This document shows positions 16,394 through 46,965 of a stretch of 56,051 nucleotides of DNA, in pieces. The notes under the pieces were generated by a model. That model saw nothing but the letters and a program-made list of their open reading frames with translations. It searched no databases and was not told the DNA's origin. The position numbers were made by a program, and so were the translations under genes. This stretch comes from Macrostomum lignano (Eukaryota): positions 1 to 56,051 of the forward strand of contig NIVC01003525.1 of the NCBI GenBank assembly GCA_002269645.1, written 5' to 3'. The stretch's first letter is position 1. Each line of letters starts with the position of its first letter.

Positions 16394-19300
16394 ATGGATG
16401 ATGTTCCTGGAGGCGTCAGGCGCCCTGACAGGCGTCAGTATTATGCAGACTACAAGCGGCAACGGATTGCCACGGAGGACCCTGTGAAGGCAGCTGCGCG
16501 TAAGGCACGTGCTGCCAAACACCAGTACCGCTATCAGGCGCGCAAACGGCAGGAAGCTGCAGGCGCAATTGCTGTACCTCCCAGTGGTGCGAATGCAGAG
16601 CCTGCAACTGAGGACACAGTGTACGACGCAGAGCATTCGGACGAGGAAATTAATCGATTTATCCCAAGACCTGCCGGCGACACAGTTGGACCCGTCGCTG
16701 GTGCAAATGCGACGCCAGCTGGCGACCACGTGCACGGGTGTGGCCAGGGGCATGGGCAACGCGAAGCATCGTATGATGCAGACGAAGAGAGCAGCAGCGA
16801 CATGGAGGATGTGCACGTGCTTGGTGGCGACCCTGCTGACAATTCCACAGATTCTGGAGACTCAGAGTCAGATGACACTGCGCAGGAACATGACTATGGC
16901 GGTCCTGACCGGCAGCAGCCAGTGACTGACGGCAGCCGTCACACATACGGCAGTTTCTGCGTTGCTGTCCAGATGTTTAAGGTGAATGTCAGTCTGAAAT
17001 TGTCAATGTCTGTCACGTATGGAATGCGAGTGCCACGAATGCGTCACCTTTTTGCGACTATACAGACGCGACACCGACTCACACGATGCGCACTGACGGA
17101 CCTGCTGCAGCTATTCGAAAGCACCCTGCCTCCTGGCTCCAAGATCCCCACGTCACCCTATCTACTGCGCAAGGCTCTCGGGGTCAACAAAAAGGTGAAC
17201 TGCACACACTACTGCCTGTCCTGCCTGGCTGAAGTCCCGGAGCAGGCCCCCGCCTGTCCATGCTGTGCTGCCGCTCTCACAGCTGACCTGCGCGGGACCT
17301 ACTGGCAGTTGGACATACTGAGCCAAGTGAGACAGTTAATCGAAACGCAGGGACTGCTGCGCAAGGTGGTGTTTCCGGCTGATCAGTCGGCCACAGAGGA
17401 GTCGCTGAGTCGCAGTACCTCCAGCAGATACCAGTATTTCAAGGCCCGTATCGACGTGGCGGCGAAGCAGCATGTCAGCGGAACGGTGAATATTGACTCT
17501 TTCCAGGTCAGTCAACTTTATGGCGTTAAAATCGTTACACTCCGGGCTGCGGCCTATAGTTACAGTCCGATAGTGTGAGTAACAAAATTAATAATTCGTT
17601 GCCATTGTGCAGGTCTTTCAAACAGCCACCTATTCAATTTGCCCGGTGTACCTGAGCATCAACGAGGTGCCCGAACGACTGAAAGGAAAATTTTTAATCA
17701 TCTGCGGGTTCTGGTGTGGACGCCGGAAACTGAATTGCACCGCCTTCCTCCGACTTCTTGTACAGCAGTTAAATATTCTGCAGTCGCGTGGCGTGGAGTA
17801 CTCCACTGGTAAATATTTACTCCAACATTGACGGATAAGACGGTCCAAAGAAAAGCATCCGCACTTAGGCTGCGTATTAAATTTTAGGTGGCGGCCCAGA
17901 CGGACTTTCCGCCGGTCGTCTGTTCGTGACAATCCTGGTGCTGCTTCTGGATGCACCCCAGCGTGTCGAAGCAACCTGTCTGCAGCAGTTTAATGCGCTT
18001 TTCGGGTGTGACCACTGTTACATCCAGACGGCCCCTGTTCCCGGTGGTGGCGGCCGTTTCTTCCCTCCTGATGTCACGAATGTGCACCTCGCCGAAGCGG
18101 AACGGCATGGCTGCCAGAACGTAACACGCCGGACTCTGGAGGACACGGTGCACCTCGCCGGTAATAAGGCACCGGCCGCCAGCAACCTGCTCGGCGTGAA
18201 GTCCGTTTCGCCTCTGATCGGACTGGTGCGACAGGGGTTCGACTACATTGTGGACTCGCCGTTCTGCTACTTGCACCAGACGCTGGGTGGCGTTAAGTAC
18301 ATCATCTGCCAGTTGTTCAGCCAGATGGACAGAAAGCCAGACAAATATGCAGGTGAGATACAGCTGCGTCTATCGCTACAAATCCATCCCACTTACAGTA
18401 CATATGAAGAATACGCAGTTGGAATCCCAATAACGGGCTTTCTTACAGTCAATCCTGATCTGCGGCACGACATTCCGACCGTGGACGTAATGACGGCCCA
18501 GATCCGGGTTCCAAGGGGCTCCATTCAGCGACCTCCCCGCAGTCTCCGGGATCTTCATCACTTCCGCGGGCACGAGTTTGAAGCGTGGCTGCTGGCATAC
18601 GGCCCTCTGGTGCTGCCCCATGTGTTGCATGGCGAGTATGAGCGATACCTGCAACACTTCCTGTTGCTGTCATCCTCCGTCTTTTGGCTGACTCTGGAGG
18701 GGGCGCCGATGACGGAAGTTGCAGGGACAAGGGCGAACCTGCGCCAGTTCGGCCATCAACTCCACGGCCTGTACTCGCGACGCGCCAGTACTTACAATAT
18801 GCACAAGGTGCTGGAGAGTGTCGTTAAGGGTTTTTAAACAAAGTTGCAGATTTTGTTCTCACTGTCACCACACGGTCATTGAAATTTTTTCCACACAGGT
18901 TACTCATCACATGACCGACTATGCCGAAATGTTCGGCCCTATCCACCTGTCAGCGGCGCAATTCGAGGCGCATCATCATGCTCTGCTCTCCCAGCTGCAC
19001 GGCAGCCGGAGCCTCGGCGCTGAGCTGCACGCCGTCATCCAGACGGAGGTCGCCTGTCGGGAACTGCGCGGTAGAGTCCCGCTTCCTCCTGCTGTCCCTG
19101 ACAACCGGCAGGAAGTGGATGGGGTGGTTGTGACTCACCCATTGCGACGGACTGACGGGTGCTTCAGACACGCGTTGCTGCCGAACGGCTTCCGTATTGA
19201 GGCCTACTCACCTCGGTTGCGGGCGCGACGCACAGTCTCCAGCTTCGTCGGCATGTTTGCGGACAACTGGTCTCACCCGAGTGATCGCTCCGCACATGAC

Positions 19301-19597
19301 TTCCTCTTTGCCCGTGTGGAAGCTATTATGCCAAGGGGCCCCCGCGTTATCCTCCGCATCGGACTGCTGCCGGTGGAGCCACCGCCTCCACAGCCAATCT
19401 TCAGTGGCGCTGCAAGCCAAGACAATGCACCCGGGGGATGCTCCTTCCGGCATGTCCGCCGTCTGCGCTGCGACCCCTTTGGAGAACTTCCGGAGGCAGA
19501 CATGCGTGAACTGGATGCGCGGCGCATCTTGGGCGCGTGTGTCCTCACAGACACGCACATCGTGCTCTTGTCGCACGCGCAGGCGTCCCATGCATGA
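16394..19597 (+). CDS. CACTA/EnSpm (CMC superfamily, Transposase_21-like) DDE transposase, 6 exons, ~915 aa, apparently intact
   Basis: Exons 16394-16981, 17066-17506, 17613-17808, 17888-18352, 18449-18807, 18899-19597; all introns GT-AG (79-106 nt); total 2748 nt. Kozak GCCATGG. Family motifs: RHRLT..LLQLF..LPPGSKIP, CxxC..CxCC, NIDSFQVF..SICPVYLSINEVP, LDAPQR..QFN..GCDHC, GVKSVSPL, YLH, PRSLRDL..EFEAWLL, YNMHKV.H..FGP..FE. Confidence 0.9.
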
Positions 19598-20193
19598 CAA
19601 ATTGCGGTGCTGCATGACTGTCTCAATGTCTGTAAACTGACTGTTTTGTAATTAAAATTTGCCTCTGCCGCCGACTGTTTGAGTTATATGTCTTTTCTTT
19701 AAACACTCTTGGATGTCGAATCTTATAAAATCCGCATACAGAAATGAGAAATTTGAATGGTAATCTAGTATGTACACCTTTTTCTGCATTTGTCTATTGT
19801 ACATATTTATATTTAATGGAAGCAAACACTGCTTTTCTTTAATATGCCGTGCATAATTTAATTAATTTTGCTCACATTTCTCCTTCGTTCAGCCAGCGAT
19901 CCTGCGATGTCAGGTCCCGTTGTAAAAAACATCCGTTTCAGAGCGTCCGTTTTGCGACTTGTCTCGCTAGATTCGATGCACTGAATTGATTGCTCTGCTC
20001 TGTTCTGTTTGCTCTGTTCCACTGACTGACTCATTGTCTTAGTTGCTTTTGTGAAACTAAAATTCAGTACCCGCGTAACGTTCCATTTCCACATTTGTGA
20101 CCATTCAATCCCCAGCTAAACTACATCCTAGATACATATCAGTACGTTTCCATATATGTACAGCGACTGCGGTGTTTTGCCCCCCCCTTGCAG

Positions 20194-21867
20194 ACGCAGC
20201 AGACGAAGACCCAGCGCAGGCCGAGTCAGCGCGCAACAACGCAGGCTTCTGCAGCAGCAGTAGCAGCAAGCACCAAGCCGAAGAAGGGCCGCAATGTTAA
20301 CTCCCAGCCAAAAGTCGCTGTACACGTGGAGAATCCCACTCCTAGCCAGCAACCCATTCTGTGCACATTCTGCGGGTCCTGGCCCCCGAGTTCCATTGCG
20401 ACCGCTGCCCCCCTGTAGGTCAGCATACGTGCGACGGCTGCAATACACAGTTCCATAATCACCCCGACCGACGCAGTCATCAGCCTGTGCGTCTACACGA
20501 AGGTAAGCTCAGAAGATATTGATACCGGGTTAAACATTTGCGAAGTCCAAGTCCACACTGTCTCGGATGCACTACAAGTCCCCCTCTCCCACGCCCACAC
20601 AATCCCTCCAGTAATCAATACGGAGCCCGCTGCCCCGTCTGTCTCTGAAGGCGCGGAAAACAGTCAGCCTGCCGCGCTAGCGACAGTCAACGAAGAAGCT
20701 GCCGGCGAAGCTGACGACGCTCCCACAGGTCCGTGCCACCAGTGCAGCTTGCTGGAGGAGCAACTCGGCGAGGCCCGGACGACCGCCAACCGCCTTGACG
20801 CGACGATCGTCGAGCTGCGCGAACAGGTCGCCGAGGCCGCGAGTGCACACCATGCAGAGGTTGCATCTCTCCGGATGGAGATTGACCACCTGCGGAATGT
20901 GTTGGCGGACCGAGACGCCGACCGACACCGTCTGGATTCTGACCTCCTGGCATTGCAGCGCAACGTCGTTGAGTGGGTGCAGTCCACTCGGCAGCACCTG
21001 CAGGGGGACCTGGCACCTCGAAGCGCGCTACAACGCCATCATTGTCTGGAAAATCGTCGTGATGAGGCTGCGGCAACCGAGTCTACGTTTTTGTCGCAGC
21101 TCTACTCTACGGAGGCGGTGTCGTTCTCTGCTGCCACTGCAGCCGCCACCGTGTCCGCCCAGCCCATGGCCGCCGCTGCTGCTGTGCATCAGCAGGACCT
21201 GGCTGCAGGCGGGGCGAGCGGCACGATGACGCCACTATTGGCCGGCTATAATATCTTGGTAAGGCGTCACACTGATTTTTTACAAAACCAAGTATTTTTA
21301 CTTGCAATCACTTCCGTTATTCCGTGTATTTCATTACACTGTCAGGTTCCTGCCCTCACCGCCGTCGTCGTTCGGTCGGCACTAAGTGACTTCAAGCGGG
21401 ACCCGGACGCTCACAATCGGAGCCGCCTGATCCGGAAGCTGCTGCAGGCCCTCTTCACCAAAGAGGAGCTGCAAATCAGCAGCTGGTCCGGCAAGACCCG
21501 CCGGCCCGGCGCTGCTAACAGCCCCGAGAAAATGATGCAGGCTCCGTCGGCTGCAAAGCTTGACGTCCTGGCGTCTTTCCTGTTGACGGAGGCCGGCATT
21601 GCTGACTGCAACGACGAGGTCCGGGCCGTGTTTAAGAACATGGCCGACAACAGTCGGCGGGGCTCGCGCCCGAAGGCTGCTCGTCCTGCCCCTGGAGGTG
21701 GCGATACGCAAGCCGAAAAGCGCCCCCGCCATGCAGAGTCTGCTATCACACTGCAATCACGGCCGGCGAATGCGGCGAATGCGTCTAATCCTGAACCGGC
21801 GGCGAATAGGGGATCTGCACCAGTGGTTAATGATGGCTCTGAACCGGCGGCGACTGCGTCTGCCTAA
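20194..21867 (+). CDS. Transposon-associated accessory protein: B-box-like Zn finger, coiled coil, BEN domain (one frameshift; start not resolved)
   Basis: Exons ~20194-20502, 20612-21258, 21346-21867. C-terminal LIRKLLQALFTKEELQISSWSGK..KLDVLASFL..VRAVFKNMADNSRR fits the BEN pattern. Heptad region LEEQLGEARTTANRLDATIVELREQV. CTFC-x8-CDRC-x7-CDGC-x4-H-x7-H results after restoring one base near 20379. Confidence 0.7.
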
Positions 21868-25059: not shown

Positions 25060-26386
25060 ACCACGTCTGTATTTGGGGTGGGCATTTTCGCTACTTTGTC
25101 TACCACAATTTACAGTGGCCAGATCGGCCAGGTCGGCCAACAGTTGCGCATGTATGTTCAAGACAAGATAGGGCCTATTGTCAACTGTTGTATTGACATT
25201 CTTTTCATTTAAAAAAGGCAGTGCTTATTTAGTCGGCACTGGCCGAATAAGTTTGCTACTATTTAGCCGGCAGGCATATTCAGGAAGGTGGCCTCTGAGG
25301 GGGAAAATTCCAGCGCACACAAAGGGTCTCGGCGCACATTGGCGCACAAGCGCGGCGCACACAAAGGGTCTCAGCACACATTGGCACACAAGCGCGGCGC
25401 ACACAAAGGGTCTCAGCACACATTGGCGGTTGGCGCACCCACACTCTGGATCATGTAGTATATGCCCGAAAATTCGGGCGTGCATTGGCCTTGCACGCCA
25501 AAATTAGGTGTGCACAGTTGGCGTGCATCACTCCTAAGAAAAAAATATGCGTGCACACCTGGCGTGCACTTTATAGAATCACGCGTAAGAGTTATTGTAA
25601 AGTAGAAAAAAGATGAAAAAGTTCATTTTTAGGCGCAAATTTCAAGCTTTTCAGTTTTTTCCAGCTCGTAAAAGAGTATTTAAACAAATCTTTGCATGTA
25701 TAAACTTTCCATTGTAAATAGTATTGCCAAAAAAGCTTTAAAAGCAACAAGATTATCTAATAATAAGGGTCTCTTGTGCAATTTAAAAAAAGGTCTTTTA
25801 TTGTCACAATGAAAAAAAGGTCATTTATTGTCGCAACACTGGCATATTTTTGAGAATGGGCATGTACTAATTTTTTTTTGGCATGCAGTAGTAATTATTC
25901 AATTTTTTAATAACGGCGCACAGAGGGCGCACAGATGGCGCACAGATGGCGCATAGATGGTGCACAGATGGCGCACAGACGGCGCACAGATTGTCCCTCT
26001 AAAATTTATTCCGGTGCACACTCTGCCACCTTCTTGACTATGGGCCAGCAGTCCTGCCCCACTGCCAGTCAAATAGCTTGTTACTATTTAGCCGGCAATC
26101 CTAGCCCCCAATGGCCACGCCATTATATATATTTATTCGAGATATTTAAACTTTGGGCAATTCAAAGTAGGTACAGTGAATATAAATCAATGCAGATTCA
26201 GTACAATTTATTACTTGCCTTCAAGTTTGTTTAATTGTTTCTGGAAGTCTTGCATATTCCGGAAATTATTTGAAGCAATAGAAGACACATAAACAAAATA
26301 AAAATTAATTATGCATGTTTTACTTTCACTTTAATCTCTAAATCAAAACCACTCATTAAAGTCAAAAAACCACTGCAAACACCTTT

Positions 26387-28666
26387 GAACGTGGGGAGAC
26401 CAGTTCAGCCTGTGGTCCAGGGTAATACCCAGACATTTAGTCTGCTTGCAGAAGGGGATTTCCCTTCCGTAAAGCGTGAGCGGCCGAATCTGCCACTTGG
26501 TCCTGCTGGTGAACATGATCGCTGCGGTCTTAGTCTCAGAGAGCCTTAAACCACAGCGGTCCGCCCATTGCTCAGCAGCGTAGATGAAGTTCTGAAGAAG
26601 GTCCCTGAGGGTATCAGGGGACGGACCAGATGCCACCGCGGTGACATCGTCCGCATATCCAACTTTCAGAATGGGGTCAGGCCGAACATCCCGGAGGAGC
26701 TCATCAATGACCATATTCCAGAGAACTGGAGACAGCACCCCACCTTGCGGGCTACCTTTGCAGACGGGGACCGTCCTCTGGTAGCCCAGCAGACTGGCGG
26801 TGGCCGTGCGATGGCTGATCATGTACATGATCCATCTGGTGAGATGTGAGTGCGTTAGCCTCTCACAAAGAGCTCTTCGGAACGCCTCAAAGAGGACGTT
26901 ATCGAAGGCGCCAATGATGTCCAGGAAGATCCCCAGAGCAAAGCCACTACCAAGCACGGCCTTCTCGAGTTTATCGACCAGGACGTGCAGCGCGCTTTCA
27001 GTGGAGCGACCCGCCCGAAAAGCGTGCTGGTTCTCGCTGAGAGGTTTGTTCTTCAGCTCAACAGAGAGAAGGCGCCAAAGCACCAGTCTCTCCATCAGCT
27101 TGACCAGGGAGGAGGTCAAGCTGATCGGTCTGAAGGATTTGATAGAATGGTAGTCCGGGCGGCCTGGCTTAGGGATAAAGATCACCTTTGCCTCGGTCCA
27201 TGCCTGCGGGACATAACCAAGCGTGATGCATGCCCGAAGAAGGCTGCAAAGTTTGCGCAGGAAGCCTGGGCATTTAACCGCCTCTCTTAGAAGGGCCGGT
27301 ACAATGCCGTCGGGTCCTGGGGCTTTGAAAGGCTTGAAGGAATTTGCCGCTCTCACAATGCGGTCCTCCGTGATGATAGATGCAGCCAGCGCGTGACCTC
27401 CCTCCGAGTGATCCGGAGTGGTCTGGTTAGCTGGCTCGTTAGGGAAAAACGCAGTGAGCATTACATCAAGCGTTTCCCCTGGGTTGTCCGTGGACGTACC
27501 GTCGGTGCGTTTGACCGAGGAGAGCTTAGACATTTTGTCCAGCGTGAGCGCTTTCACAACTCTGGAGGTGGGGCGTGAGCCCTCTAGCTCCTCACAGTAT
27601 TGTCGCCATTTTTGAGCCTTTGCATTCCTAACCTGCCTTTTAAACTCATGAATTGCTTCATGATAGGCGGTTTGGTCTGCAGGGCTCTTAGTTTTAGTTG
27701 CTCTGCGGTGGAGTCTCTTAGCCCTGCGACGGAGGTTGCCGAGCTCGGGATTCCACCACGGCGCCAATTTTTTCCCTTTATAGGCTTTTAAAGGGCAGGA
27801 CGCCTCAAAGGCGGCGGTTAGCGTCTCTGTCAAAACAGTCGCGCACTCATCCGCCTCTCGGCACGACGTGATCGTGGATGGTTGGCCAGGAGACCGATGG
27901 AATTCCTTCAGGGCGAGCCCGAAGGTTTCCCAATCCGTATTTCTGGCGTTCCGTCTCCACATAACACGAGTTGCGCTACGCGCGGCCATTAGGTTGAAGG
28001 AGATGAACTTGTGATCCGATAGTGAGGACACTGGAAGCACCCGCCACGCCCCAATACTCTGGTAGAGTCTGGGCGTTGCGAGCGTAGCGTCGATCACCTC
28101 CGACCACCGTCCGTTGTCAAAGGTAGGGGTGGACCAGAGTTGCAGAACTCGAGGGTCGTAGAGGCAACGTAGGCTAGGAGGTCTTCGCCTCTCTGATTAA
28201 TGCCAGTGCTGCCCCAGTGAGTGTGGTGGGCGTTGATGTCGCCGGCAACCATGAGCTCGTAGTTTTTGGCAGAGCAGAGCTCTACCAGCGTAGCGAGGGC
28301 TCTGGGGACGACCGCAGCATCGCCTGGTAGGTAAACCGAGGCAATGAGGGTGGTCTTCCCAGGAAGAAGGTCCTCGGATTGGATGACGCAGATGTCCCTG
28401 TTGGACAGGTCCGATCTGAGCCACGCACTGAGCGTTTTGCTCGCAAAGATGCAAGCTCTGGGAGGCTGGTTGGCCTCGCGAGGGTAAGTATAAAAACAAT
28501 TGTAGCCAGCAGGGGCGTTTTGAGGCTTACCTCTGAGAGTCCAGGGTTCCTGGACGAGGATGAGCCCCGGCTTGTCGAGCTCGGCGTAACGCATAAGGTT
28601 GACCGAGGCTGCGACGCAGTGCTGCAGATTAATCTGCAGGCAATGGATTCCCTGGTTGCTGATCAT
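26387..28666 (-). pseudogene. LINE ORF2, N-terminal part: AP endonuclease plus reverse transcriptase, frameshifted
   Basis: APE motifs QINLQH, LVQEPW, ASVYLP, GDINAHH..WGS, SDHKFI. RT motifs KAPGPDG, FRPISLTS, QHAFR, DIIGAFDN, PQGGVLSPVLWN, YADD, LGITLD. A 1-nt deletion near 28133 shifts NSG-(S)TPTFDNGRWSEVID. Confidence 0.9.
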
Positions 28667-28808
28667 TATCACGCAGTTGGGGAATCGTTGAGCAGGTCAT
28701 CCTCCTCCTTTTCAGTGGTGGGTGACCCGCAGACCTCCATGGGAGTTTCAGCGTCCTCAGCAGTTAGGGTGGCTGTGGAGTCCTCCGCGGACGTGAGCCC
28801 AGCGTGGA

Positions 28809-30232
28809 CGCCAAAAGCCAAAAAGGCCTTCGCAGTCCTCGCGCAATTGCGCAGGGCCGTCGGCACCACCTGGGGGCTCACCCCCAAGCGCCTCTGGTGG
28901 ATCTACACTGCAATGGTTAGGCCCGCTATCTCGTATGGCGGCCTGATCTGGGCTAGCGCCCTGCAGATAAAGACCTGTCTAGAGGCTCTCAGGAGAGCGC
29001 AAGGGCGCGCTTGTCGCACGATCATGAGCGCCCCTCCGTCTGCTCCTTACGATGGCCTCAACGCCTTCCTCAACATTCCTCCCCTGGACATCTTTGTCCG
29101 CAGGGAAGCGGCTAAGACTGCCCGCCGTCTAGCTGACGCTGGCATTCGAATCCAGCCCCATAGGGCCATGGCTAAGCGCAAGCTTCTGCCCCACGCTGAC
29201 CTCTGCCTCAAGGACTTGAGAGACAGCGGCGGGCTCCACGTCCTATCTGACGGCGAACCCCGCACTCTCAACCTCTTTCAGCGCTACAAGGTCACCATCC
29301 CCTCTAGGGATGCTGCCAATGACCACTGGAATTTCCAGGAGGTCCATTGCTACACGGACGGATCCATCAAAGACGGTCGCGCCGGCTTTGGGGTCTGCAT
29401 CATCATCAACGGCCGCGTAATTGCCACGCATGCCCAGCACACTGGTAGACTCTCCACAGTCTTCCAGAACGAAGTCCTTGCCATCAGCTCTTGCGCTGCA
29501 GAGCTAAACGCCAAGGTTACGAGAGGAAAGACTATTGTCATCCACTCCGACAGCCAAGCGGCCTTACAGGCCCTTTGCCACACCACAACGAACTCCCGGA
29601 CAGTCGCCGACTGCGCCCGGCAGCTCAACCTCCTGGCCAGAAGCAATACTGTCAGGCTGAAGTGGATCCCAGGGCACGCAGGGTTTCCGGGGAACGAGCT
29701 GGCAGACACCCTCGCCAAGAGGGGCGGCTCTGGCTCTTTTTTCGGCCCTGCCCCCCTGGTCCCTATGCCCTTGACAGTCATCAATCGTCAGATCGACGAC
29801 TGGGCTGACTCCCTCCACAGGGACAGATGGGCGGGCACCCAAAACTGCCGGCAATCTCGTGCCGCGGTTCCTTGCCCGTCTCACAGGCTCAGAAACATCC
29901 TTCTGAACCAGAATCGGAAGGATATTCGAGCCCTTGTCATGACCCTTACCGGCCATGGCTACCTCGCCAGGCACTGCTTCCTCCGAGGCGACCTCGAGAG
30001 CGAAATTTGCCCCTTTTGCGAGTGCGACAATGAAGATGCTCAGCACTTTGTCTGTCACTGCCCTTTCTTTAACAGAGACCGGCTACGCTACCTCGGGCCG
30101 AACCCGTCCATTGACGAGGTTTGCCAGCCCGACAGCATCCCACGGCTCATCCAGTTCCTTCGGGCGACTAGACGAGCCAGTTTCTTCCCAACGGAAGATC
30201 ACGCTGCAGGACGGACCGGCGGACCACCCTGA
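28809..30232 (+). pseudogene. LINE ORF2, C-terminal part: post-RT region, RNase H, Zn knuckle
   Basis: KAKKAFAVLAQLRRAVGTTWGLTP; RNase H YTDGS..QNEVLAI..HSDSQAAL..WIPGH..GNELAD; CPFC..ED..HF..HC; stop at 30232. Confidence 0.9.
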
Positions 30233-32098
30233 CCGGCCCCACGCCTCTGCCTGTCTGCGGGCCTTCAGGGGCTAGCGGAATGGGCGACCCTCGCCTCCCC
30301 GCTGTGTCTACGGACCACCCTGCAGCTAAGTCAAGTCAAAGTCAAAGCAAACACCTTTAACTAAAAACTCCAAAATTGTAGTATAAATAATTAGCTTGTA
30401 GTATGTTAAATTATTAACTTAAGGTCATGACGAGCAGTGCGCAGTTATAAAATGTATAAATGTATTTTGACCAGCATGTCCATTGGGGGCCAGGATTGCC
30501 AGCAGTGGGGCGGGACTGCTGGCTAAATAGTGACACGATTATTTGACAGGTGCCAGCTAAATAGTAGCGAACTTATTCGACCAGTGCCGGCTAAATAAGC
30601 ACTGCCTTTAAAAAAATCCTGAATTTTTTATAGAAAATTCAGATAAGCCATTAGGCCTTATCCTTAAGGTTCAATAATTTTTTTTGCATGTCTACTTGGA
30701 GCAAAAAAAGAATTGCACTCTGAGCTAAGCATAAAATTGCACTTTTAAATTAGGTACAAGTGCAATTTTGTACTTTGCTTCTCTAGCAAAAAACTCAGAT
30801 CTTGTTTTGAATTTTGTCTTAGAAAAAAATTAGAATTTTAACAGCTTTAATTTTTAGTTACAGATAAAAGCTATAATTGAAAATGCTATACAAAAGAATT
30901 GTTTTGCACATAGGGTTTAATGTTCAAAGGCTTTTTATAATATGAACAAAGATAATTGTTAGTAATATTATAGGCCTAATAATTTTTATGGCACTTAAAT
31001 AATATAGTGATCTCATTACCATATAAATAGTGAAATGGTTATTTTTATGGTCAACATATAAAACAAATATCATCTAAGTTTTAGATAGTATCATTTAAAT
31101 ATATAGTACAAACAAACTTTTTTTGATAAGAATAGTTTCAGCGTATGGTGCTAACTTTTTTGATTGGATTTGTTTTGGTGCAGGCATGCTATGATCCTGA
31201 CTATGGGCTCTTAGTAGGATCTTCAGTCTGTTTACCACAAGTTAAAAAGAATACAACCAAAAATGGAAATCTCTAGTCCAAAAATCTAAAATAGCATAAA
31301 AAGTAGGGATTTATATCTTTTAAATTAAAGAACTCTTTAAGAAAATTAGAAAAATATAGAATATGTTAAAAGCAGTGAAGCTAAACATTGTACATTTTTA
31401 CGTATATATAAATTGATGCCAGAAAACACAACTTAAAATGAATTCATTTTTCATGTTAAAATAGCTATTTTAATAAAGTTTAATGATATAGATGCAAAGT
31501 TAGATATGCAATGACTCTGCTTTTGGCTGCCTTTGACTGTTGTGTTACTAAGTATCCTATCGCTATCACCAGTGTTGTGCTTGGCTTTCTAGCTTCTGTG
31601 ATGGGATAGACTGCTATCATCCGAAGCAACCTTGCTAAGTATACTTGTGGAGGCTGAGACTGAGGAGAAATCTAAGATCAAGAGTAGTGCTGCCACCAGT
31701 GTGGGAACCATAGGATCCACAATGAAGGGGTCTGTTTGGGTTCTTCACAAATAAATAATGCTAGAACAACTAGTCTTAGATATTTCAATGTCCAAATGAT
31801 AGGACATCTTATTATTTACAGTGAATGCTAATTACTTAAATGGGATAGTATCTTTTGTATAACCTTGACCCTTCTGCTAAGTCATTGTAACAATAATAAT
31901 TGCTATAAATAAAAACCATAAAAGAAAGCTATTTATCTACTTATATATTTATGCTACTTATCTAAGGAGTAATTATCTAAGAATATATATAGTTGTGGTT
32001 ATAGAGCATAAAGTTATAATAAAAAGTTTCTTTTGAAGCTATTGTACTATGAGATGGATTTAATTGTATTTATTTATCATCATGATTCAATTCATGCA

Positions 32099-35000
32099 AT
32101 GATTGGGAATGGAGGAATTCCTATACAGAGTCTGGCTGGCATCACAAGCCTTACTGACAGTAAGTAATTTGTTTATGAGTCTGGTTACCCTTTTAATATG
32201 GTCCTAATCATTCAACTGCTTGTTCCCATCACTTGAATCTTCCCTAATAATCATTATTAGGATTTCTTAAATGTCCTAAAAATCCTAAGCAGCCATGATT
32301 TTAAAATTCCCCAAAATCCCAGTTACTTGTGCTATTCTATTATAATAAAAGATCATGGTACCTTGAGAATCCACACTCGCCATCACAAATCCACGAGTTT
32401 CCCATTAAGGAATCCTATAGGGAAACTCAGCCACTCATACTACCGGAATTCCCCATGGAGAATCCCAGCCACTTATAATCCCGTAATTCCCCCATTGGAA
32501 ATCCCATCTGCTCAATCGCAGAATGAGAATCTCCCATGGGGAATCCCAGCCACTTATAATCCCGAAATTTCCCATGGGGAATCCCAGCCAGTCATAATCC
32601 CAGAATTCCCCATGGGGAATCCCAGCCACTCATAATCCCGGAATTCCCTATAGGGAATCCCAGCCAATCATCATAATCCTAAAACTTCCTACGGCAATAT
32701 AGAATAAGCCTTCAATCTACTGTGGAAATTAAACAAACCCGCACTACTAACAGTAGTACACTATCGATTATCGCCCGCAGTCTTGCCCGAGCTGCCGCTG
32801 CCCAGGCCTGTCCAGTCCAGTCTATCGCGCCAGCAGTCCCTGTACTACAGCCAGCGAGTTGGTCAGCAGGCCGAGCAGCAGCTGGCCCAGGGGCGCGGCA
32901 ACATGCGCCTGTTAGAGAGCATCGGCTGGGCCCTCACCCAGACCGACACTTCATCTATCGAGCTCAAATCCGATCAATGCGCCGCTGCCGCACCGCCGGC
33001 TCTGTTCCAGGCCGTTTTGGCGCAGAATACCCGCCGATTTGAGAAGCGGCCCGAGTTCGCTCCCTACTGCCAGTCCTTGCTGGCTAACGGAGCCGGCGGT
33101 CGGGCAGCGGAAGACGCCGGTGTCGGGGGCGGCGGAGCCCCGCCAGTCTCGGGGTCGGCCACGTCGGGGCTAGTCGATGACGCCGAGCCGGACCAGGACC
33201 AAGAAGAGTCTGGCAAGCGGGAGAAACACCGGCACAAGAAGAAAAAGCGCAAGAAAGAGCGCGAGCGTCGCTCGTCTTCTTCTACAAGGGACGACACGAA
33301 CGAGACCAATCCGAGCACCTCGACGACACCGTCGGGAGCCTCGGGCCAGGTGACGGTGGTCAGCCGGGAGGGCATCAAGATCAAGCTGAAGCTGCCGTCA
33401 CCCGTGGTGAAGCCAATCAGGATTGAGAATCCCGCTTCGGAGCGGCCCGCGATTGTCTCCGACGATGTCGCCGAAGACTCCGTCGCCGCCGTCGGGGAGG
33501 CGGCGGACGCTGAAACGGCTTCGGTGTCCCGGCAGCATAAGAAAGAGAAGCGCAAGAAGCACAAGAAAGACAAACGGAAACGCAATGAAGTTGATTCAGA
33601 GCCGGGCGGTGATGCTTTGCAGCAACAGCAGCACCCACCGCTGCAGCCGCTCACACTGTCGATGCCTCAGTCGGCTGCTGCTGCACCAGCGTCTTCATCG
33701 CTAACTCCTGGCGGACTCAACGCTTTGGACTCGCCGGGCTTCTCCCGCCAGCAGCAGCAATCGAAGCTTCAGGAGTTATTAACGAGGCCAAGGCCTGCTC
33801 AGCAGACTCCTCAAATGCCTCCCCAGCATCCGCCTCCTCCTCATCAGCAGCCGATGCAGCCGCCGATGCCTCATCAACAGCAGCAGCAACAAACAAATTA
33901 TCCTCCTTCCCAGCCTCCGATGCCTCATCATCATCATCCTCAGCAGCAGCAACAGCAGCTTCCTATGTACGGGTCGCCAACCCAGATGCCTATAATGCCG
34001 CCAATGCAGCAGCAGCAACCGCCGCCGCAGGTGTCCACAGCTCTCCCAGCCTCCCTATTCGATAACCTGCAGCTGCTGCCAGGCTTCCTGGCTGGTCCTA
34101 GCGGGGCCGACGTGCTGCCGGAGATCGGGGAGAACTGGCCCGACCAGCCCACCCTGTCCTATCCCAATCTGGGCGAAGTTTCCTGCGGCGCCGGCGGCGG
34201 CTATCCCGGCGGTGACAGCTCCGGGTTCCCCTTCCTGCCGCAGCTTCCTATCGGGGCTTCGTCTCCGCATCATCTGCATCATCATCAGATGCAGCAGTCC
34301 GTTGCCACACCGCAGCTGTCAATGCAACCGCCGCCGCCTCCTCAGCAGCAGCCAATGCCGCATCCGCATCATCTCAGCGGCGCTGGCAGCGGCAAGGGCG
34401 GCAAGCCAGCCTCCGTCACTGGCGGCGGCTCGTCGACTCGAAAATCCAAACGCGGCGGCGGCGGTGGCGGCACTCGTCGAGGTGGCGGAAGGTCGCGCGG
34501 CGGCGGCGCCGGTGGCGACCCAGTCAGCAGCGAGGTGCGCAACCTCATGGACTGGCGCGTGCGCGACAAAACTGGCGGCGCCTCGACTGCGGCAGACGGC
34601 GGCGACTCCATGGACGCCGACGAGTCGTGGGACTCGCGGCTGGAGCAGCACAACCGGTCTCTGGCTGGCCGGTTCAAAAACTCGCGCCGGCTCGCCGCTC
34701 AGCAACAGCGCGGCAACATGCAGAACATGCCGGACTATCTGGAGAGTGACGACGAGGACGATGGAGAAGGCGGCGGAGCGTCGAAACGGCAGCGGCGCGA
34801 CTCCGACGAGGATTTTAAAGGTAGATGGTCGATGGACTGCGCAAGTGTTTTGACGATTTGCCGTTATTTTGATGTCAAATTTGGCGCCTATCTGATGTCA
34901 ATTTTGGCGCCATTCTGATGTCAGTTTTGGCGCCGATCTGATGTCAGTTTTGGCGTCATTCTGATGTCAGTTTTAGCTCCGATCTAGTGTCAGTTTTAGC

Positions 35001-38000
35001 GCCATTCTGATGTCAGTTTTGGCGCCGATCTAGTGTCAGTTTCAGCGTCATTCTGATGTCAGTTTTAGCGCCGATCTATTGTCAGTTTCAGCGTCATTCT
35101 GATGTCAGTTTTAGCGCCGATCTATTGTCAGTTTCAGCGACATTCTAATGTCAGTTTTAGCGCCGATCTAGTGTCAGTTTCAGCGTCATTCTGATGTCAG
35201 TTTTGGCGCCAATCTGATGTCAGTTTTATTTTATTAGATTTGTTGTCATGTTTCTTAGCCACCTCTTCTCTGCAGTTCTCATTGCATGCCCTCAGTATAT
35301 GGTTGACTGTAGCACAGATCTCTTGAAATACATATTCTAGAATTCAGATTTTATTTTTTAACGATTGTTGTCTTGCGTGTCTTTTGCATATCAATATGCC
35401 ACTATATTATATTATATATTGCAATCTGTAGTTCTGTAGTCATTTAATATCTATGCACTATTATGTAGCACTTTTAGCACTATACTGCGCTGCAGCCTCC
35501 CCTACATACGGTAACGGTTGTTGGATCCAAATTGATCTATTTTTTAAAATCAATACTTCAGTCAGCTTTTTGCTTGCTAGAATCCGAGTCAGTCAGCTCT
35601 TAATGATGAAGCGACAACAGAAACGATCAGTGCAGCCTCGGCAGGAGGAGTCGCTAGTGATGAAGAAGAAATCTCGGCCCAGCCTGCTGAGCTGCGACTC
35701 AGTGGAATTGGCATTAGATTCGGCTAGCAGTAACTTGATTGCCGCATCTGCTCAGCCTTGCATTCGTCAGATAGTACTGTCGGATCGTCTCCATGGTAGT
35801 AGTATAATCTGTTCTAGTAAACCTGCATGCGTTCTGTTTGGTGATCTCTTCTGTTCAATAGTCTTCAGTTCTGTTTCAACTGACATTTTAAAAAAAATTA
35901 TGTTTATTTTTTAAGCGCGATTTTGTGCACATTTTTCGTTGCAACTTTTATTTTACAATTTTAGAATCGCTACATACTACTGGTTGTAAGTAGACGCAAA
36001 AGCATTTTTAACGCGTTTTTATTTTCACAGTTTTTAAACCCATTTTTCGTTTCTTTTAAAATTAAAATTAGCAAATCTTATGCTACTTTCTGTAAGTAGT
36101 AGTATGCAAGTATTTTATGTTTTTTCAGTTGAAAAAAGTTACCAGTGACAAGAATTTATAAAGAGTCTAGTGCAAGCAAATACAAACAAGTAGACTGGTA
36201 CAGCTCTACGGCCCCAGAGCCGCAGACAATAAAAACGTCTAAAATCGACTCTTTGGCGTTTTAGAGTCGGACCGGAGTCACTTGTTGTCTATTTTATCTG
36301 AAAAAATTAATTAGTTTTAATTTTCACAATCCATGCAGTTCGGCTGAAGGGAAGCTCGGAGAGTCGCTACCCGCCGATCGCCAAGGGCAACAGCGACCGG
36401 CCCCGTGAGCGAGTCAAGTGCGGCCTGGGCGTCAACCTGGGCGTCCTGTCCACCGAGGAACTCGTCGCCTCCGAGACCTTCGTCCACTTCAAAGAGTTGG
36501 TTGATCAAGCTCTGGACGCGGTGGAAGATGTCGATATCAAAGTGCTGGACGACTCTGACGAACTGCCAGGCGAGTTGAAGATTCCGTCCAGACTGCTGTC
36601 TGACCTGTGCGCCAAGGCCAACCAGATGAAAGCTGTGGGGGCCATGAAGGAGATGCCGGTTCATCGGCTGGTCCGACTGCTCAGCCTGCTCTTGGCTAAT
36701 ATCAAGGATGGGGCCAAGCTCGTGCCCTTCGCCAAGCCTGTGAGTCTTTGTGGCGTCTGTTTGGCTCTTTGTAGCTGCTGTCACTGTCTCTTTGTCTTTG
36801 TATCTGGTGCCTGTGTGTCTTTGTATCTGGGGCCTGTGTGTCTTTGTATCTGGTGCCTGTGTGTCTGTGTATCTGGTGCCTGTGTGTCTTTGTATCTGGG
36901 GCCTGTGTGTCTTTGTATCTGGTGTCTGTGTGTCTTTGTATCTGGTGCCTGTGTGTCTTTGTATCTGGTGTCTGTGTGTCTTTGTATCTGGTGCCTGTGT
37001 GTCTTTGTATCTGGTGTCTGTGTGTCGTTGTATCTGGTGTCTGTGTGTCTTTGTATCTGGTGTCTGTGTGTCTTTGTATCTGGTGTCTGTGTGTCTTTGT
37101 ATCTGGTGTCTGTGTGTCTTTGTATCTGGTGTCTGTGTCTTTGTATCTGGTGTCTGATTCTTTGTATCTGGTGCCTGTGTGTCTTTGGATCTGGTGTCTG
37201 TGTGTCTTTGTATCTGGTGTCTGTGTATCTTTGTATCTGGTGTCTGTGTCTTTGTATCTGGTGTCTGTGTGTCTTTGTATCTGGTGTCTGTGTGTCTTTG
37301 TATCTGGTGTCTGTGTATCTTTGTATCTGGTGTCTGTGTCTTTGTATCTGGTGCCTGTGTGTCTTTGTATCTGGTGTCTGTGTGTCTTTGTATCTGGTGT
37401 CTGTGTATCTTTGTATCTGGTGTCTGTGTGTCTTTGTATCTGGTGTCTGTGTGTCTTTGTATCTGGTGTCTGTGTGTCTTTGTATCTGGTGTCTGTGTGT
37501 CTTTGTGTCTTGTGCCTTTGTGTCTTTGTATCTTTTATTTGTTTTTATCTGTTTCGCCCTGTATATTCAGCTATTTTAAACGGCAACCCACCTGTACTGT
37601 AACTACAGGCTGAAGACGCCGAAGACACAGAGGGCCGCCTTTGGCGCGAGCTGTGCATGGAGCGGGTGATGCGCTCAGTTGAGTCCTCCCTCACCGCCCT
37701 GATCATCATGACGTCACCAGGCATGCCCAAGCAGGTCTTTGTTGAAGACGTGATCGAGCGAGCCGTGGCGGTGGCCAAGTTCCAGCTGAACAGCACCGTG
37801 TACCCGGAGGCCGACCCCGCCTACCGCAAGACCAGCCAGCACAAGGCCACTCAGCAGAGCATCCGCAGCCAGCGGGCCAAGGAGCGCGGCCACGGTGCCC
37901 TGGCTGCCGGCAGCGGCGGCGGCCGGCCCCGGGCCCTGACTCACCTGTTGAACCGCCTGGTGGAGCTGGTGGACAGCTTCGCCCAGCTGGTGGACCTGCA

Positions 38001-41000
38001 GAGACTCACTGACAATGCCATCTTGGCCATGTCTGGCCTGGCGGTGGCTCCGTTCTTTGTTGAGAACGTTGAGAATCTGCAGCTCAGCGCCCTGCGGCTC
38101 TGCACCAGCGTCTTCTGCCAGTACGAGAAGCACCGGCAGCTGATTCTGGAGGACCTGTTCGCCTCCTTGGCTCGCCTGCCTAGCAGTAAGAGAAGCTTGA
38201 GAAGCTTTCGACTCAACTCTGAGGAGAGCATCCAGATGCTCACGGCGCTGTCCCTGCTGCTGGTGCAGTCTGTAGTCCTGCTGCCAGCCAGTGTGCCGTC
38301 AAGTAAGGATCAAGACAACACTGCGGCAATGGCCCTGCTGGATGCGTACGAATCTGCTAAGAAAACTGCTCAGGTGAGCTGTGTGCGGCTCTGATTCTTT
38401 TAGATAATGCCAGATTTTATCTGGAAGTAACTTCTGGATTTGTCTGTCTGAGTACAGATAATTTAGTGTCTGTAGCTTGATAATTACAGCTAATTAATTG
38501 TCTGTAGCTTGATAATTACAGCCAATTAAGTGTCTGTAGCTTGATAATTACAGCCAATTAAAGTGTCTGTAGCTTGATAATTACAGCCAATTAAGTGTCT
38601 GTAGCTTGATAATTACAGCCAAGTATCTGTAGCTTGATAATTACAGCCAATTAAGTTTCTGTAGCTTGATAATTACAGCCAATTAAGTGTCTGTAGCTTG
38701 ATAATTGCAGCCAATTAAGTGTCTGTAGGTTGGTAATTACAGCCAATTAAGTGTCTGTAGCTTGATAATTACAGCCAATTAAGTGTCTGTAGGTTAATAA
38801 TTACAGCCAATTAAGTGTCTGTAGGTTGATAATTACAGCCAATTAAGTGTCTTTAGCTTGATAAATACAGCCAATTAAGTGTCTATAGCTTGATAAATAC
38901 AGCCAATTAAGTGTCTATAGGTTGATAATTACAGCCAATTAAGTGTCTGTAGCTTGGTAATTACAGCCAATTAAGTGTCTATAGCTTGATAAATACAGCC
39001 AATTAAGTGTCTATAGGTTGATAATTACAGCCAATTAAGTGTCTTTAGCTTGATAATTACAGCCAATTAAGTGTCTGTAGCTTGGTAATTACAGCCAAGT
39101 AAGTGTTTGTAGCTTGGTAATAACAGCCAATTAAGTGCCTGTAGCTTGATAATTACAGCCAATAAGTGTCTGTAGGTTGATAATTACAGCCAATTAAGAG
39201 TCTTTAGCTTGATAAATACAGCCAATAAGTGTCTGTAGGTTGATAATTACAGCCAATTAAGTGTCTGTAGGTTGATAATTACAGCCAATTAAGTGTCTGT
39301 AGCTTGATAAATACAGCCAATTAAGTGTCTGTAGCTTGGTAATTACAGCCAATTAAGTGTCTGTAGCTTGGTAATTACAGCCAATTAAGTGTCTATAGCT
39401 TGGCAATTACAGCCAATTAAGTGTATGCAGTTTGATAATTATAGCGAATTAAGTGTCTGTAGCTTGATAAATACAGCCAATTAAGTGTCTGTAGCTTGAT
39501 AATTACAGCCAATTAAGTGTCTGTAGCTTGGTAATTACAGCCAATTAAGTGTATGCAGTTTGATAATTACAGCCAATTAAGTGTCTGTAGCTTGATAATT
39601 ACAGCCAATTAAGTGTCTGTAGCGTGGTAATTACAGCCAATTAAGTGTCTGTAGGTTAATAATTACAGCCAATTAAGTGTCTGTAGCTTGATAATTACAG
39701 CCAAGTAAGTGTCTGTAGCTTGGTAATTACAGCCAATTAAGCGTCTGTAGCTTAATATTTACAGCCAATTAAGTGTCTATAGCTTGATAAATACAGCCAA
39801 TTAAGTGTCTGTAGCTTGATAATTACAGCCAATTAAGTGTCTGTAGCTTGATAATTACAGCTAATTAAGTGTCTGTAGCTTGGTAATTACTGAAAATTAC
39901 AGATCCTCATTACTAAATCTTCCTACCAATTCCCCTTTTCCAGGTATTCCTCGTCGTATTCCTGAACAAGTGCGCCAAGAAGGCGGAGGAGCAGGACTAC
40001 CGGGGCATATTCGAGAAGTTCGTAGAGGACCTGCTGCTAGCGGTGAACAAGCCGGAATGGCCGGCTGCCGAGATGTTCCTCAGCTTGCTTGGCGGCCTGC
40101 TGGTGAAGCAGTTCGCCGATCGCAGCGTTGACCAGGCGCTCCGTGTGGCCTCGCTGGACTACCTGGGCACCGTGGCATCCCGACTGCGCAAGGACGCCGT
40201 GACCAGCGAGATGAGCGAGCAGGATCTGGACAGTCTGGTGGCGGAGATCCGCGGTCACTCGCGCGGCCTCGAAGCCTCCGGTGCTGGCGCCAGTTCCGCG
40301 ACCGCCGCACCCGACGAAGCCCCAATCACCAAGGAGGAGCGAATCGTTATCCTGCAGAAAGCCATCGTCGACTACCTCAACGCTGAAGATGTGGACGCCT
40401 CGGTGCACTACGCTGTCCGCTTCTACCTGGCCCAGTGGTACAAAGACTGCGCCAAGGAGGTCGAGCGAACTTTGCAGCAGCAACGCGACGCTGCCAATAA
40501 CGATGAATCGGCGGTGGCGCACGAGTCGCTGGACGTGCTGGAGTCCCGACGCACCGCTCTGCTGGTGCGAAGCTGCGAGTTCGGCGCCGCTGACAGTCAG
40601 CAGCTGGCCTCCAAGAGGCGGCTGATGAGCACCGGCAGGAGCGATGCCTACATGCTGGACTATGAGGAGGCCTGCCTGGTGTGCCGCTACCTGGCTTCTA
40701 TGCGGCCATTCTCGCAGAGCTTCGACATCTACCTGTCGCAGATACTGAAGGTGCTCAATGAGCAGTCAGTTGCCGTGCGCACTAAGGCCATCAAGTGCCT
40801 GACAGCCGTTGTCGAGGTGGACCCGTCGGTGCTGGAGCGGGCAGACATCGAGCGGACAGTTCACGGTAGACTGTTGGACAACTCCACCTCTGTTAGGGAG
40901 GCCTGTATTGAGCTGATTGGCAAGTTCATCATTGTGAGGCCGCAGTTGACTGCTCAGTACTACGGGATGCTGTCTGAGCGGATTCTGGACACCGGCATCA

Positions 41001-44000
41001 GCGTGCGCAAGCGGGTGATTAAAATATTTCGCGACATCTGCGTTGAGCAGCCGGATTTCAATAAAATTCCGGAGATGTGCGTCAAAATGATTCGACGTGT
41101 CAACGATGAAGAGGGCATTCGGAAGCTGGTTAATGAGGTCTTCCAGGCCATGTGGTTCTCGCCTGTAAAGGAGTCGCACAATGTCAAGCTGCTGCAGAAG
41201 GTTATGAACATCACGGACGTGGTGGCCGCTTGCAAGGACCAAGTGAGGCTTGCGGAGACCGGGTTTTGGGCAGGAGGGTAGATTTGAGGGTGGGAGGGTT
41301 GATTGAAGGGTGAGAGGATACATTTAAAGGTAGATTGAAGGGTGAGCGACTAGATTGAATGGTGAGAGGCTAGATTGAAGGGTGAGAGGGTAGATTTTAG
41401 GGTGAGAGGCTAGATTGAAGGGTGAGGGGGTAGATTGAAGGTTGAGAGGGTAGATTGAAGGGTGAGAGGGTAGATCGAAGGTTGAGAGGCTAGATTGAAG
41501 GGTGAGAGGCTAGATTGAAGGGTGAGAGGGTAGATTTTAGGGTGAGAGGCTAGATTGAAGGGTGAGGGGGTAGATTGAAGGTTGAGAGGGTAGATTGAAG
41601 GGTGAGAGGGTAGATCGAAGGTTGAGAGGCTAGATTGAAGGGTGAGAGGCTAGATTGAAGGGTGAGAGGCTAGATTGAAGGGTGAGAGGCTAGATCGAAG
41701 GTTGAGAGGCTAGATTGAAGGGTGAGAGGGTAGATTGAAGGGTGAGAGGTTAAAAGAAGGTTGAGAGGGTAGATTGAAGAGTGAGAGGGTAGATCGAAGG
41801 TTGAGAGGCTAGATTGAAGGGTGAGAGGGTAGATTGAAGGTTGAGAGGCTAGATTGAAGGGTGAGAGGCTAGATTGAAGGGTGAGAGGTAGATTGAAGGG
41901 TGAGAGGGTAGATTGAAGGGTGAGAGAGTAGATTGAAGGGTGAGAGGCTAGATTGAAGGTTGAGAGGCTAGATTGAAGGGTGAGAGGCTAGATTGAAGGG
42001 TGAGAGGCTAGATTGAAGAGTGAGAGGGTAGATTGAAGGGTGAGAGGGTAGATTGAAGGGTGAGAGGCTAGATTGAAGAGTGAGAGGCTAGATTGAAGGG
42101 TGAGAGGCTAGATTGAAGGGTGAGAGGGTAGATTGAAGGGTGAGAGGCTAGATTGAAGAGTGAGAGGCTAGATTGAAGGGTGAGAGGCTAGATTGAAGGG
42201 TGAGAGGGTAGATTGAAGGGTGAGAGAGTAGATTGAAGGGTGAGAGGCTAGATTGAAGGTTGAGAGGCTAGATTGAAGGGTGAGAGGCTAGATTGAAGGT
42301 TGAGAGGCTAGATTGAAGGGTGAGAAGCTAGATTAAAGAGTGAGAGGGTAGATTGAAGGGTGAGAGGCTAGATTGAAGGGTGAGAGGGTAGATTGAAGGT
42401 TGAGAGGCTAGATTGAAGGGTGAGAGGCTAGATTGAAGGGTGAGAGGCTAGATTGAAGAGTGAGAGGGTAGATTGAAGGGTGAGAGGCTAGATTGAAGGG
42501 TGAGAGGCTAGATTGAAGGGTGAGAGGCTAGATTGAAGGGTGAGAGGCTAGATTGAAGGGTGAGAGGTAAGCTACAACAAAGCTCCAAAACTAATACCGC
42601 TGAGTCGATAATCAGCCATTTTCATCAGCAATAAACTTGCTCACCAATAATTCAGGGATACGACTGGTTCGAGGGCCTTCTGCGCAGCCTGCTCAAAGAG
42701 GAGAAGGAAGAGAAACTCCGGCCGGTTGAGAAGGCCTGCCGCCAGATAGTGGACACGCTGGTAGCCAACATCATGCGCCTGGAGGAGATCTCCAGCAACA
42801 ACAACCAGCGCCTGGTGGCCTGCCTGTGCACCCTGTACATGCTGACCAAGATCCGGCCGAATCTCATGGTGGACCACGCCAGCACTCTGCAGTCGTATTT
42901 GAAAATCAAAATCAGCAGCCAGCAGGATAACTATGTGCTGCATTATGTGGCTAAGATTCTGGAGCTCACCGTGCCGCTGATGGAGCACCCAGATGAGGAG
43001 GAGCTGCGCTCGATCGAGCAGGAGATGGTGCAGCTGACCATGCGCAAGGGCATGATGGTGCTAGACAGCGCGATCGCCTGTCTGAGCGCAGTGGTGAACC
43101 GGGTCACGCACAACTACTCGCTGATCCGGTCCTGCTTCAACCTGTTCTACACGCCCATCGACCGGCAGCAGCAGGAGAACATGGCCACTGGCGCCGAGCT
43201 CATCGATCCCCGGCAGAAGCCGTCAATCCTGCGCGGCCTGTACACCGTCGGACTGCTGTTGAAGTACTTCGACTTGGAGAGCATCACCACCTACGAGACT
43301 GGAGCTATCATGCAGCGCGTGTTCAGCTCGTTCATGTTCTTCTGCTCCCAGTGCGCCGACCCAGATGTGGTGAAGAAGTCCCTGATGGGCCTTGGCTTCA
43401 TGTGCGCCAGGCACTCGCACCTGCTGCTTCAGGACCCGCTGAAGACCTACTACTGCGAGCTTATCGCCGGTCCCATGGTGTCCGACGAGACCAAAACCCT
43501 GGTGCTGAAGAACCTCACCAGCTTCCTGCTTGAGGAGGAAGCCAGCATGGTGCAGTCCGACTCCACCTGGAAGGAGCATGTGCAGCAGGAGTCGCTGAAG
43601 GAGATGCACGATGTGCAGAGCGGCAAGGCCAGCATGGTGGCTCAGGCTTATCTAGATCACGTGAGTCCCCGGTTGAGTAGGGTCTGCACTCTTTCTCCTC
43701 GGGATAATGGCCCCTCACAACTCTGCAAAATCACCTGGATTTCCCCTCCATAAAAAGTCGACTCGACTGACTCAAAACTGCATAAAAAATCCCAAACCCC
43801 CATCGAAAATCGCCCCCAAGACCCCATCAAAAATCGCCCTCAAACCCCATCAGAAATCGCCCTCAAAACCCATCAAAAATCGCCCTCAAACCCTATCGAA
43901 AATCGGGTTTTCGATAACCCTATCGAAAATCGCCTTCAAACCCTATCAAAAATCGCCCTAGAACCCCATCAAAAATCGCCCTCAAACCCCACCAAAAATC

Positions 44001-46016: not shown

Positions 46017-46099
<83 letters not shown>

Positions 46100-46102
46100 T
46101 AG

Positions 46103-46147
<45 letters not shown>

Positions 46148-46478
46148 GACTGACTGTCTGTCTTAGTGTCTGTATCTGTCTGTCTGTCTGCCTGCCTGTC
46201 TTAATGTCTGTCTTAGTGTCTGTCTCTGTCTGTCTGTCTGTCTGTCTGTCTGCCTGTCTATTTATCTGCCTGCCTGCCTGTCTGACTGTCTGTCTGTCTG
46301 ACTGTCTGTCTGTCTGACTGTCTGTCTTAGTGTCTGTCTCTGTCTGTCTGTCTGTCTGACTGACTGTCTGTCTTAGTGTCTGTCTGCCTGCCTGCCTGTC
46401 TGACTGTCTGTCTGTCTGACTGTCTGTCTTAGTGTCTGTCTCTGTCTGTCTGTCTGTCTGACTGACTGTCTGTCTTAG

Positions 46479-46511
<33 letters not shown>

Positions 46512-46863
46512 GACTGACTGTCTGTCTTAGTGTCTGTCTCTGTCTGTCTGTCTGCCTGCCTGTCTTAATGTCTGTCTTAGTGTCTGTCTGTCTGTCTGTC
46601 TGACTGACTTAGTGTCTGTCTGTCTGTCTGCCTGCCTGCCTGCCTGTCTGTGTGTGTGTCTGTCTGTCTGTCTGTCTCTGTCTGTCTGCCTGTCTATTTA
46701 TCTGCCTGCCTGCCTGTCTGACTGTCCGTCTGTCTGTCTGACTGTCTGTCTGATGTCTGTCTGTCTGTCTGCCTGTCTATTTATCTGCCTGCCTGCCTGT
46801 CTGACTGTCTGTCTGTCTGACTGTCTGTCTGTCTGTCTCTGTCTGTCTGTCTGTCTGTCTGAC

Positions 46864-46962
<99 letters not shown>

Positions 46963-46965
46963 TAG

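Follow-up and report, generated by a model that had tools for sequence, protein, structure and literature searches.

Within a 56,051-nucleotide stretch of Macrostomum lignano DNA (contig NIVC01003525.1 of assembly GCA_002269645.1; hereafter the window), two fragments of a long interspersed nuclear element (LINE) appear to lie head to head between positions 26375 and 30358. Our analysis indicates that this locus is probably the product of a single retrotransposition of a non-L1 LINE, bearing RNase H and an APE-type endonuclease, that was resolved by twin priming. The preliminary description of this DNA had already taken the apparent pair for one insertion, and we reach the same view, since a single pair of target-site duplications (TSDs) encloses both arms and the arms are contiguous in all 78 homologues that span them.

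The outer limits of the insertion are set by the 12-mer GCAAACACCTTT, which occurs exactly twice in the window, at 26375–26386 and 30347–30358, both times in direct orientation on the plus strand. The copies are identical at 12 of 12 positions, and permitting one mismatch still yields only these two sites. Both adjoin the ends of a 3,960-nucleotide block (26387–30346) that has a GC content of 56–60%, the surrounding DNA having 32–38%; the upstream copy abuts the inverted arm. An exact 12-mer match at two fixed positions is expected by chance only about once in 10^7 trials, and we therefore conclude that the TSD is real, as had been proposed when a single 12-bp duplication was said to bracket both parts. 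Neither copy is inverted, both being read on the plus strand. Comparison of the joined flanks with the window by BLAST, in search of a paralogous empty site, returned short local repeats only; an empty or uninverted allele should read ...AAAAAACCACTGCAAACACCTTTAACTAAAAACT... at the target.

The arm orientations and the order of domains within the block can be read directly from the DNA. The downstream, sense arm extends on the plus strand from ~28809 to 30346 (1.54 kb) and its translation starts (TP)KAKKAF; from 28814 the frame reads KAKKAFAVLAQLRRAVG... / KAKKAFAVLAQLRRAVGTTWGL.... Pfam matches, motifs and homologue alignments delimit a coding part (28814–30232) that comprises the region C-terminal to the reverse transcriptase (RT), an RNase H domain at 29339–29725 (Pfam RNase_H, E=8.8e-15), a CCHC motif recognized by motif reading at 30008–30061 (CPFCECDNEDAQHFVCHC) and a stop codon at 30230–30232. 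All four RNase H catalytic motifs (TDGS, E, SDS and ADxLA) are kept. The remainder of the arm (30233–30346) consists of a 3′ untranslated region of ~95 nt followed by a terminal tail, (AAGTC/AAAGTC)n, whose approximately four units (30328–30346) were identified by Tandem Repeats Finder and by direct reading and end against the right TSD.

The upstream arm lies on the minus strand (26387–28808) and, at ~2.42 kb, agrees with the 2.4 kb first estimated for it. Open reading frames (ORFs), Pfam matches and homologue alignments show that it carries, in element order, the presumed tail of ORF1, the start of ORF2, the endonuclease and the RT. The endonuclease (28000–28666, minus strand), running from the ORF2 ATG (28666–28664) to an SDH motif (28019–28011), is matched by Pfam Exo_endo_phos and Exo_endo_phos_2, and the RT by RVT_1 (26424–27176, minus strand; E=2.2e-31), with its YADD motif at 26657–26646. 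The final residues of the arm, ..LNWSPHV, lie against the left TSD: the frame is open to ...LGITLDHRLNWSPHV at 26388 and is followed by a single C (26387) and then the TSD. One frameshift interrupts the endonuclease coding region at ~28127–28148, where tblastn alignments of homologues change frame at a run of C; apart from this, ORF2 has no internal stop in either arm. This suggests that the copy is fairly young, or else that the frameshift is a sequencing error in a homopolymer.

At the other end of the inverted arm, the 5′-most element sequence retained (28669–28808, minus strand) is a short ORF of ~135 nt ending ..AEDSTATLTAEDAETPMEVCGSPTTEKEEDDLLNDSPTA, whose TGA (28671–28669) stops 2 nt ahead of the ORF2 ATG. 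It has no Pfam match, and from its position it is plausibly the C-terminal tail of ORF1. The placement of this tail at the internal junction, as given in the preliminary description, is borne out; the position of the junction itself, which had been put at ~28808, we can bracket only to 28808–28813, by codon and frame reasoning against the 78 spanning homologues, and the 5′ limit of the inverted arm falls within the same interval.

Ordinary target-primed reverse transcription never yields a LINE fragment that is without the element's 3′ end. The inverted arm has neither an element 3′ end nor a 3′ tail, and it is its 3′-most coordinate that adjoins the left TSD; the arm is therefore not an independent insertion. 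Two insertions that came to lie head to head by chance would be the call made by an annotation pipeline (GraffiTE notes such mislabelling for L1), but they ought to have left two TSD pairs, not one, and there would be no reason for the arms to be contiguous in ORF2 coordinates. We find this explanation hardly credible, and regard it as excluded by the single TSD pair together with the missing 3′ end.

Contiguity of the arms was assessed with homologous proteins. Querying with the RT part yielded 272 homologues, of which 120 were fetched. The best full-length homologues of the RT part are 46–51% identical to it, and two Macrostomum lignano proteins reach 62–70% identity over parts of the query. 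Seventy-eight of the 120 fetched homologues align to both arms and, without exception, they have two residues between the V of SPHV, with which the inverted arm ends, and the K of KAKKAF, with which the sense arm begins. The closest spanning relative, P0057 from Macrostomum lignano, reads ...LNWTPHIQTKAKKALAVLAQIRRAVG and runs uninterrupted across the join (NWTPHIQTKAKKALAVLAQIRRAVG; ...CLGLTLDHRLNWTPHIQTKAKKALAVLAQIRRAVGTTWGLTP...), its sequence there corresponding to the end of the window's inverted arm fused to the start of its sense arm. Because all 78 spanning homologues have two residues between the arms, we take 0–5 nt to have been lost, with no overlap of the arms; this upholds the earlier statement that the sense part continues the inverted part within about one codon. 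The nearest relatives common to both arms are P0057 (62% identity to the inverted arm and 59% to the sense arm), P0067 (70 and 60%) and P0005 (50 and 40%). The arms are also similar in composition, with GC contents of 0.56 and 0.60 and third-position GC contents of 0.64 and 0.70 for the inverted and sense arm, respectively; these values are consistent with both arms coming from one lineage.

At the nucleotide level, the two sides of the internal join read ..CTGAACTGGTCTCCCCACGTTC / AAAGCCAAAAAGGCC.. in element order. The expected element DNA is GTT Cnn nnn AAA GCC, of which the inverted arm supplies GTTC and the sense side ..TGG ACG CCA AAA GCC. The suggestion that AAAG is shared between the target end and the LINE at the break is not borne out in that form: joining GTTC directly to AAAAGCC, as it implies, breaks the reading frame and leaves the sequence short by one codon. 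If the next codon were Gln (CAA) as in P0057, a hypothetical codon, 2–3 nt would be shared with the 3′ end of the top strand (..CCTTT). If the family had one extra residue here (HVQ-T-P-KAKK), all bases would be accounted for, the Gln codon being completed by the AA shared with the target. An alternative alignment, in which MAFFT paired the sense-arm upstream residues AWTP with NWTP of the relative, would hint at an overlap together with a 12-nt deletion. We rejected it because several positions distinguish the DNA TGGACGCCA from TGGTCTCCC in the inverted arm, because homology does not extend upstream and because the same bases read as the ORF1 tail on the opposite strand.

Further copies of the family were sought without success. 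Searches of the element against the 56-kb window by blastn and tblastn gave none; an exact scan of JGI metagenome contigs for the uninverted junction (TGGTCTCCCCACGTTC, 0–12 N, AAAGCCAAAAAGGCC) gave 0 matches, as did a third-position-degenerate scan of the same contigs for the ORF2 start, and a look-up of the DNA record of P0057 found nothing.

The element is, on the evidence of its coding sequence and tail, an APE-type LINE and, as had been proposed, one that bears RNase H and is not L1. Pfam matches and motifs give ORF2 the domain order endonuclease, RT, RNase H and C-terminal Cys/His motif. The only PDB match of the endonuclease is that of TRAS1, a member of the R1 clade (E=1.3e-5), and the same search produced no match to the L1 endonuclease at E≤1. 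The RT matches human L1 ORF2p at E~1e-16, compared with 1e-130 for its RNase H-bearing relatives, and the best relatives of the element carry RT and RNase H. The presence of RNase H after the RT, the microsatellite-like (AAGTC)n tail in place of poly(A), the TRAS1-like endonuclease and the remote match to the L1 RT thus set the element apart from the L1 clade. We place it, from these sequence comparisons, among the RNase H-bearing I/Nimb/Loa/R1-type LINEs as a group, with a TRAS1/R1-like endonuclease.

Each geometric prediction of twin priming that can be tested on sequence is supported at this locus, and the geometry, recognized as such from the outset, fits the published definition (PMC2837659, PMC2912911). 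In the sense arm, the 3′ tail of the element adjoins the downstream TSD. In element coordinates the inverted arm comes directly 5′ of the sense arm, to within 0–5 nt, and it is turned so that its 3′-most coordinate meets the upstream TSD and its 5′-most sequence (ORF1 tail and ATG, 28664–28808) lies at the internal junction. Moreover, the 12-nt TSD falls within the range of 10–20 nt that the literature links to 5′ inversions.

From this arrangement we infer which strand was nicked first, how the cDNAs were primed and that a single RNA was used. The element endonuclease would first introduce a nick at the left edge of GCAAACACCTTT in the bottom strand, and ordinary target-primed reverse transcription, beginning at the (AAGTC)n tail, would yield cDNA of the 3′ 1.54 kb. 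The top strand would then be nicked 12 nt downstream, and its freed 3′ end, ...CACCTTT-3′, would anneal within the same RNA just 3′ of ...CCCCACGUUC. A second cDNA primed there would run 2.42 kb toward the 5′ end of the RNA and halt in the ORF1 tail. Finally, the first RT would halt at the second primer and the two cDNA 3′ ends would be joined, leaving, between two TSDs, first the inverted 5′ arm, then the sense 3′ arm and lastly the tail. On this proposal the arms abut almost perfectly because the first cDNA stops where the second primer sits. Since the tail is (AAGTC)n, the first primer cannot have annealed to poly(A). Being inverted and without its 5′ end, the resulting copy is dead on arrival, and it has the one frameshift besides.

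The same two nicks might instead have primed on two different RNAs of the same family, by ‘dual priming’ or template switch, so that the inverted arm derived from a second transcript. For some L1 loci, such a two-RNA case has been proposed that could not be told apart from twin-priming variants (PMC2837659) and, as the arms do not overlap, a common template is not shown directly here. Two RNAs, however, give no reason for the arms to meet within 0–5 nt, an abutment that a first RT blocked on the same RNA would produce; a chance match within two codons of an ORF2 of ~1,200 codons would have a probability of ~0.005. We therefore consider the use of two templates unlikely.

Another route to the same two arms would be an ordinary 5′-truncated insertion of ~3.96 kb whose 5′ 2.4 kb later became inverted in the chromosome, and the frameshift does indicate that the copy is not brand new. 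For this, one breakpoint would have to coincide exactly with the boundary between LINE and TSD, leaving the left TSD intact and uninverted as it is found. In addition, there is no inverted repeat at either of the two breakpoints that could have driven it, and we judge a secondary inversion very unlikely.

Several points weigh against twin priming as the explanation of this locus. We have a single copy of the family to go by. The literature has 5′ inversions nearly restricted to L1 in human cells, which makes for a low prior for a non-L1 element. Lastly, the structure is known from the assembly alone, and a misassembly is possible: repeats are prone to misjoins, and two fragments of a repeat family might have been joined wrongly. 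It would be unexpected, however, for such an artefact to bring together complementary, non-overlapping arms that form one ORF2 and to set them between perfect 12-bp direct repeats in unique AT-rich DNA. A fold-back chimera would give a palindrome of the same segment, and self-BLAST shows no internal match. An assembly artefact is accordingly quite unlikely in our estimation, and a single insertion resolved by twin priming continues to be the explanation that we favour.

The surroundings of the insertion have features of their own. The 9-mer AAAGTCAAA occurs only twice in the window, at 26358–26366 in the target, 8 nt upstream of the left TSD, and at 30338–30346, where it closes the LINE tail. 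Chance alone would give about one occurrence in a window of this size, and the probability of its co-location with the insertion site, judged post hoc, is ~4e-4; the pair may stem from homology between tail and target or from the endonuclease preferring certain targets. Short tandem arrays with units of 42, 11 and 38 nt lie around the insertion region at 25313–25428, 25915–25991 and 32420–32671, respectively, and pieces of the left flank reappear, in inverted form, at ~30474–30550 in the right flank. The site of insertion may have been within an older host repeat.

Farther downstream, the plus strand of the window has exons of a cohesin-loader gene resembling Nipped-B/NIPBL (37822–38376, 39941–41269, 42656–43663, 45319–45735 and 48379–48810), with Cohesin_HEAT, PDS5-like and Nipped-B_C domains. 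The protein that matches it best comes from a monogenean flatworm (55% identity over 99% of a 412-residue exon). Taken with the Macrostomum relatives of the LINE, this match points to a platyhelminth host. The first recognizable exon of the gene begins at least 7 kb downstream of the LINE, which is in a 5′ intron or in intergenic DNA. The gaps between the exons are nearly filled by tandem arrays (36785–37533, 38453–39890, 41331–42567, 43793–45293 and 45773–47601), each different from the others, with periods of 23, 32, 20, 23 and 4 nt, 33 to 465 copies and lengths of 0.7–1.8 kb. Introns made almost wholly of unrelated minisatellites are unusual, and these arrays account for the extreme GC and AT skews in the window. 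Long GC-rich ORFs (292–711 residues) at 16394–21867 and 32783–34918, both on the plus strand, have no Pfam match; they may represent N-terminal exons of the Nipped-B-like gene that are poorly conserved, or else other repeats.

In the literature searched, the term twin priming occurs in 106 papers, and essentially every one of them is about mammalian L1. Twin priming was reportedly put forward by Ostertag and Kazazian in 2001 in connection with 5′-inverted L1 insertions. The 5′-inverted L1 insertions of human and mouse, and their relation to twin priming, are treated by Kojima in 2010 (PMC2912911), and the present locus resembles them in having one TSD pair around two opposite fragments of one element, with the 3′ fragment in sense orientation and carrying the tail and the inverted fragment representing the adjacent upstream segment. 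As in those insertions, a few nucleotides at most are lost at the inversion point and the TSD is within 10–20 bp. Unlike L1, the flatworm element has RNase H, a CCHC C-terminus, an (AAGTC)n tail rather than poly(A) and an endonuclease nearest to that of TRAS1/R1, and the probable host is a flatworm, not a mammal; the flatworm-like host sequence agrees with the earlier view that this is an invertebrate element. The primate L1 twin-priming variants and ‘dual priming’ of Meyer et al. in 2010 (PMC2837659) likewise combine second-strand priming with inverted sequence inside one TSD pair. In those variants, however, the non-inverted part is very short or the inverted sequence is poly(A) alone, whereas the arms here measure 2.42 and 1.54 kb and abut precisely.

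Outside L1, the only case of 5′ inversion in the literature searched is Nimb-2_DR, a zebrafish element of the Nimb clade (I group). Yamaguchi et al. in 2014 saw 5′ inversions only with L1 in human cells, a single Nimb-2_DR insert being the exception: in chicken DT40 cells, 1 of ~30 de novo inserts was 5′ inverted, and the TSDs of this element peak at ~12 bp (PMC4245944). They argued that second priming needs a long 3′ overhang, and concluded that 5′ inversion depends on LINE and host alike (PMC4245944). The element described here resembles Nimb-2_DR in its 12-bp TSD, its I-type domain set and the presumed combination of ORF1 and ORF2; the difference is that Nimb-2_DR was an engineered element in heterologous vertebrate cells, whereas ours is a natural copy in an invertebrate genome. 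By analogy, the locus may be viewed as the natural counterpart of the single Nimb-2_DR event, and it fits the overhang model. The novelty originally attached to the locus is less than was implied, a 5′ inversion of a non-L1 element having been recorded experimentally before (PMC4245944). The locus is a natural example of a known mechanism and not a new mechanism.

One locus is an anecdote, and the value of this one would lie in a genome-wide count for the family. It is conceivable, though on balance we doubt it, that 5′ inversion is not confined to L1 in mammals but general for APE-type LINEs with a 3′ overhang of at least ~10 nt, that this flatworm I-group family recurrently inverts in the germline and that the first RT stops exactly at the duplex of second primer and RNA. 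Annotation pipelines would call such loci two head-to-head LINE fragments, so that copy counts would be inflated and insertions misdated. Twin priming is one of the few windows on second-strand events in LINE integration, and a clean natural case from an invertebrate, in a LINE that bears RNase H and has a 12-bp TSD, supports the notion that it is overhang length, rather than biochemistry specific to L1, that permits second-strand priming.

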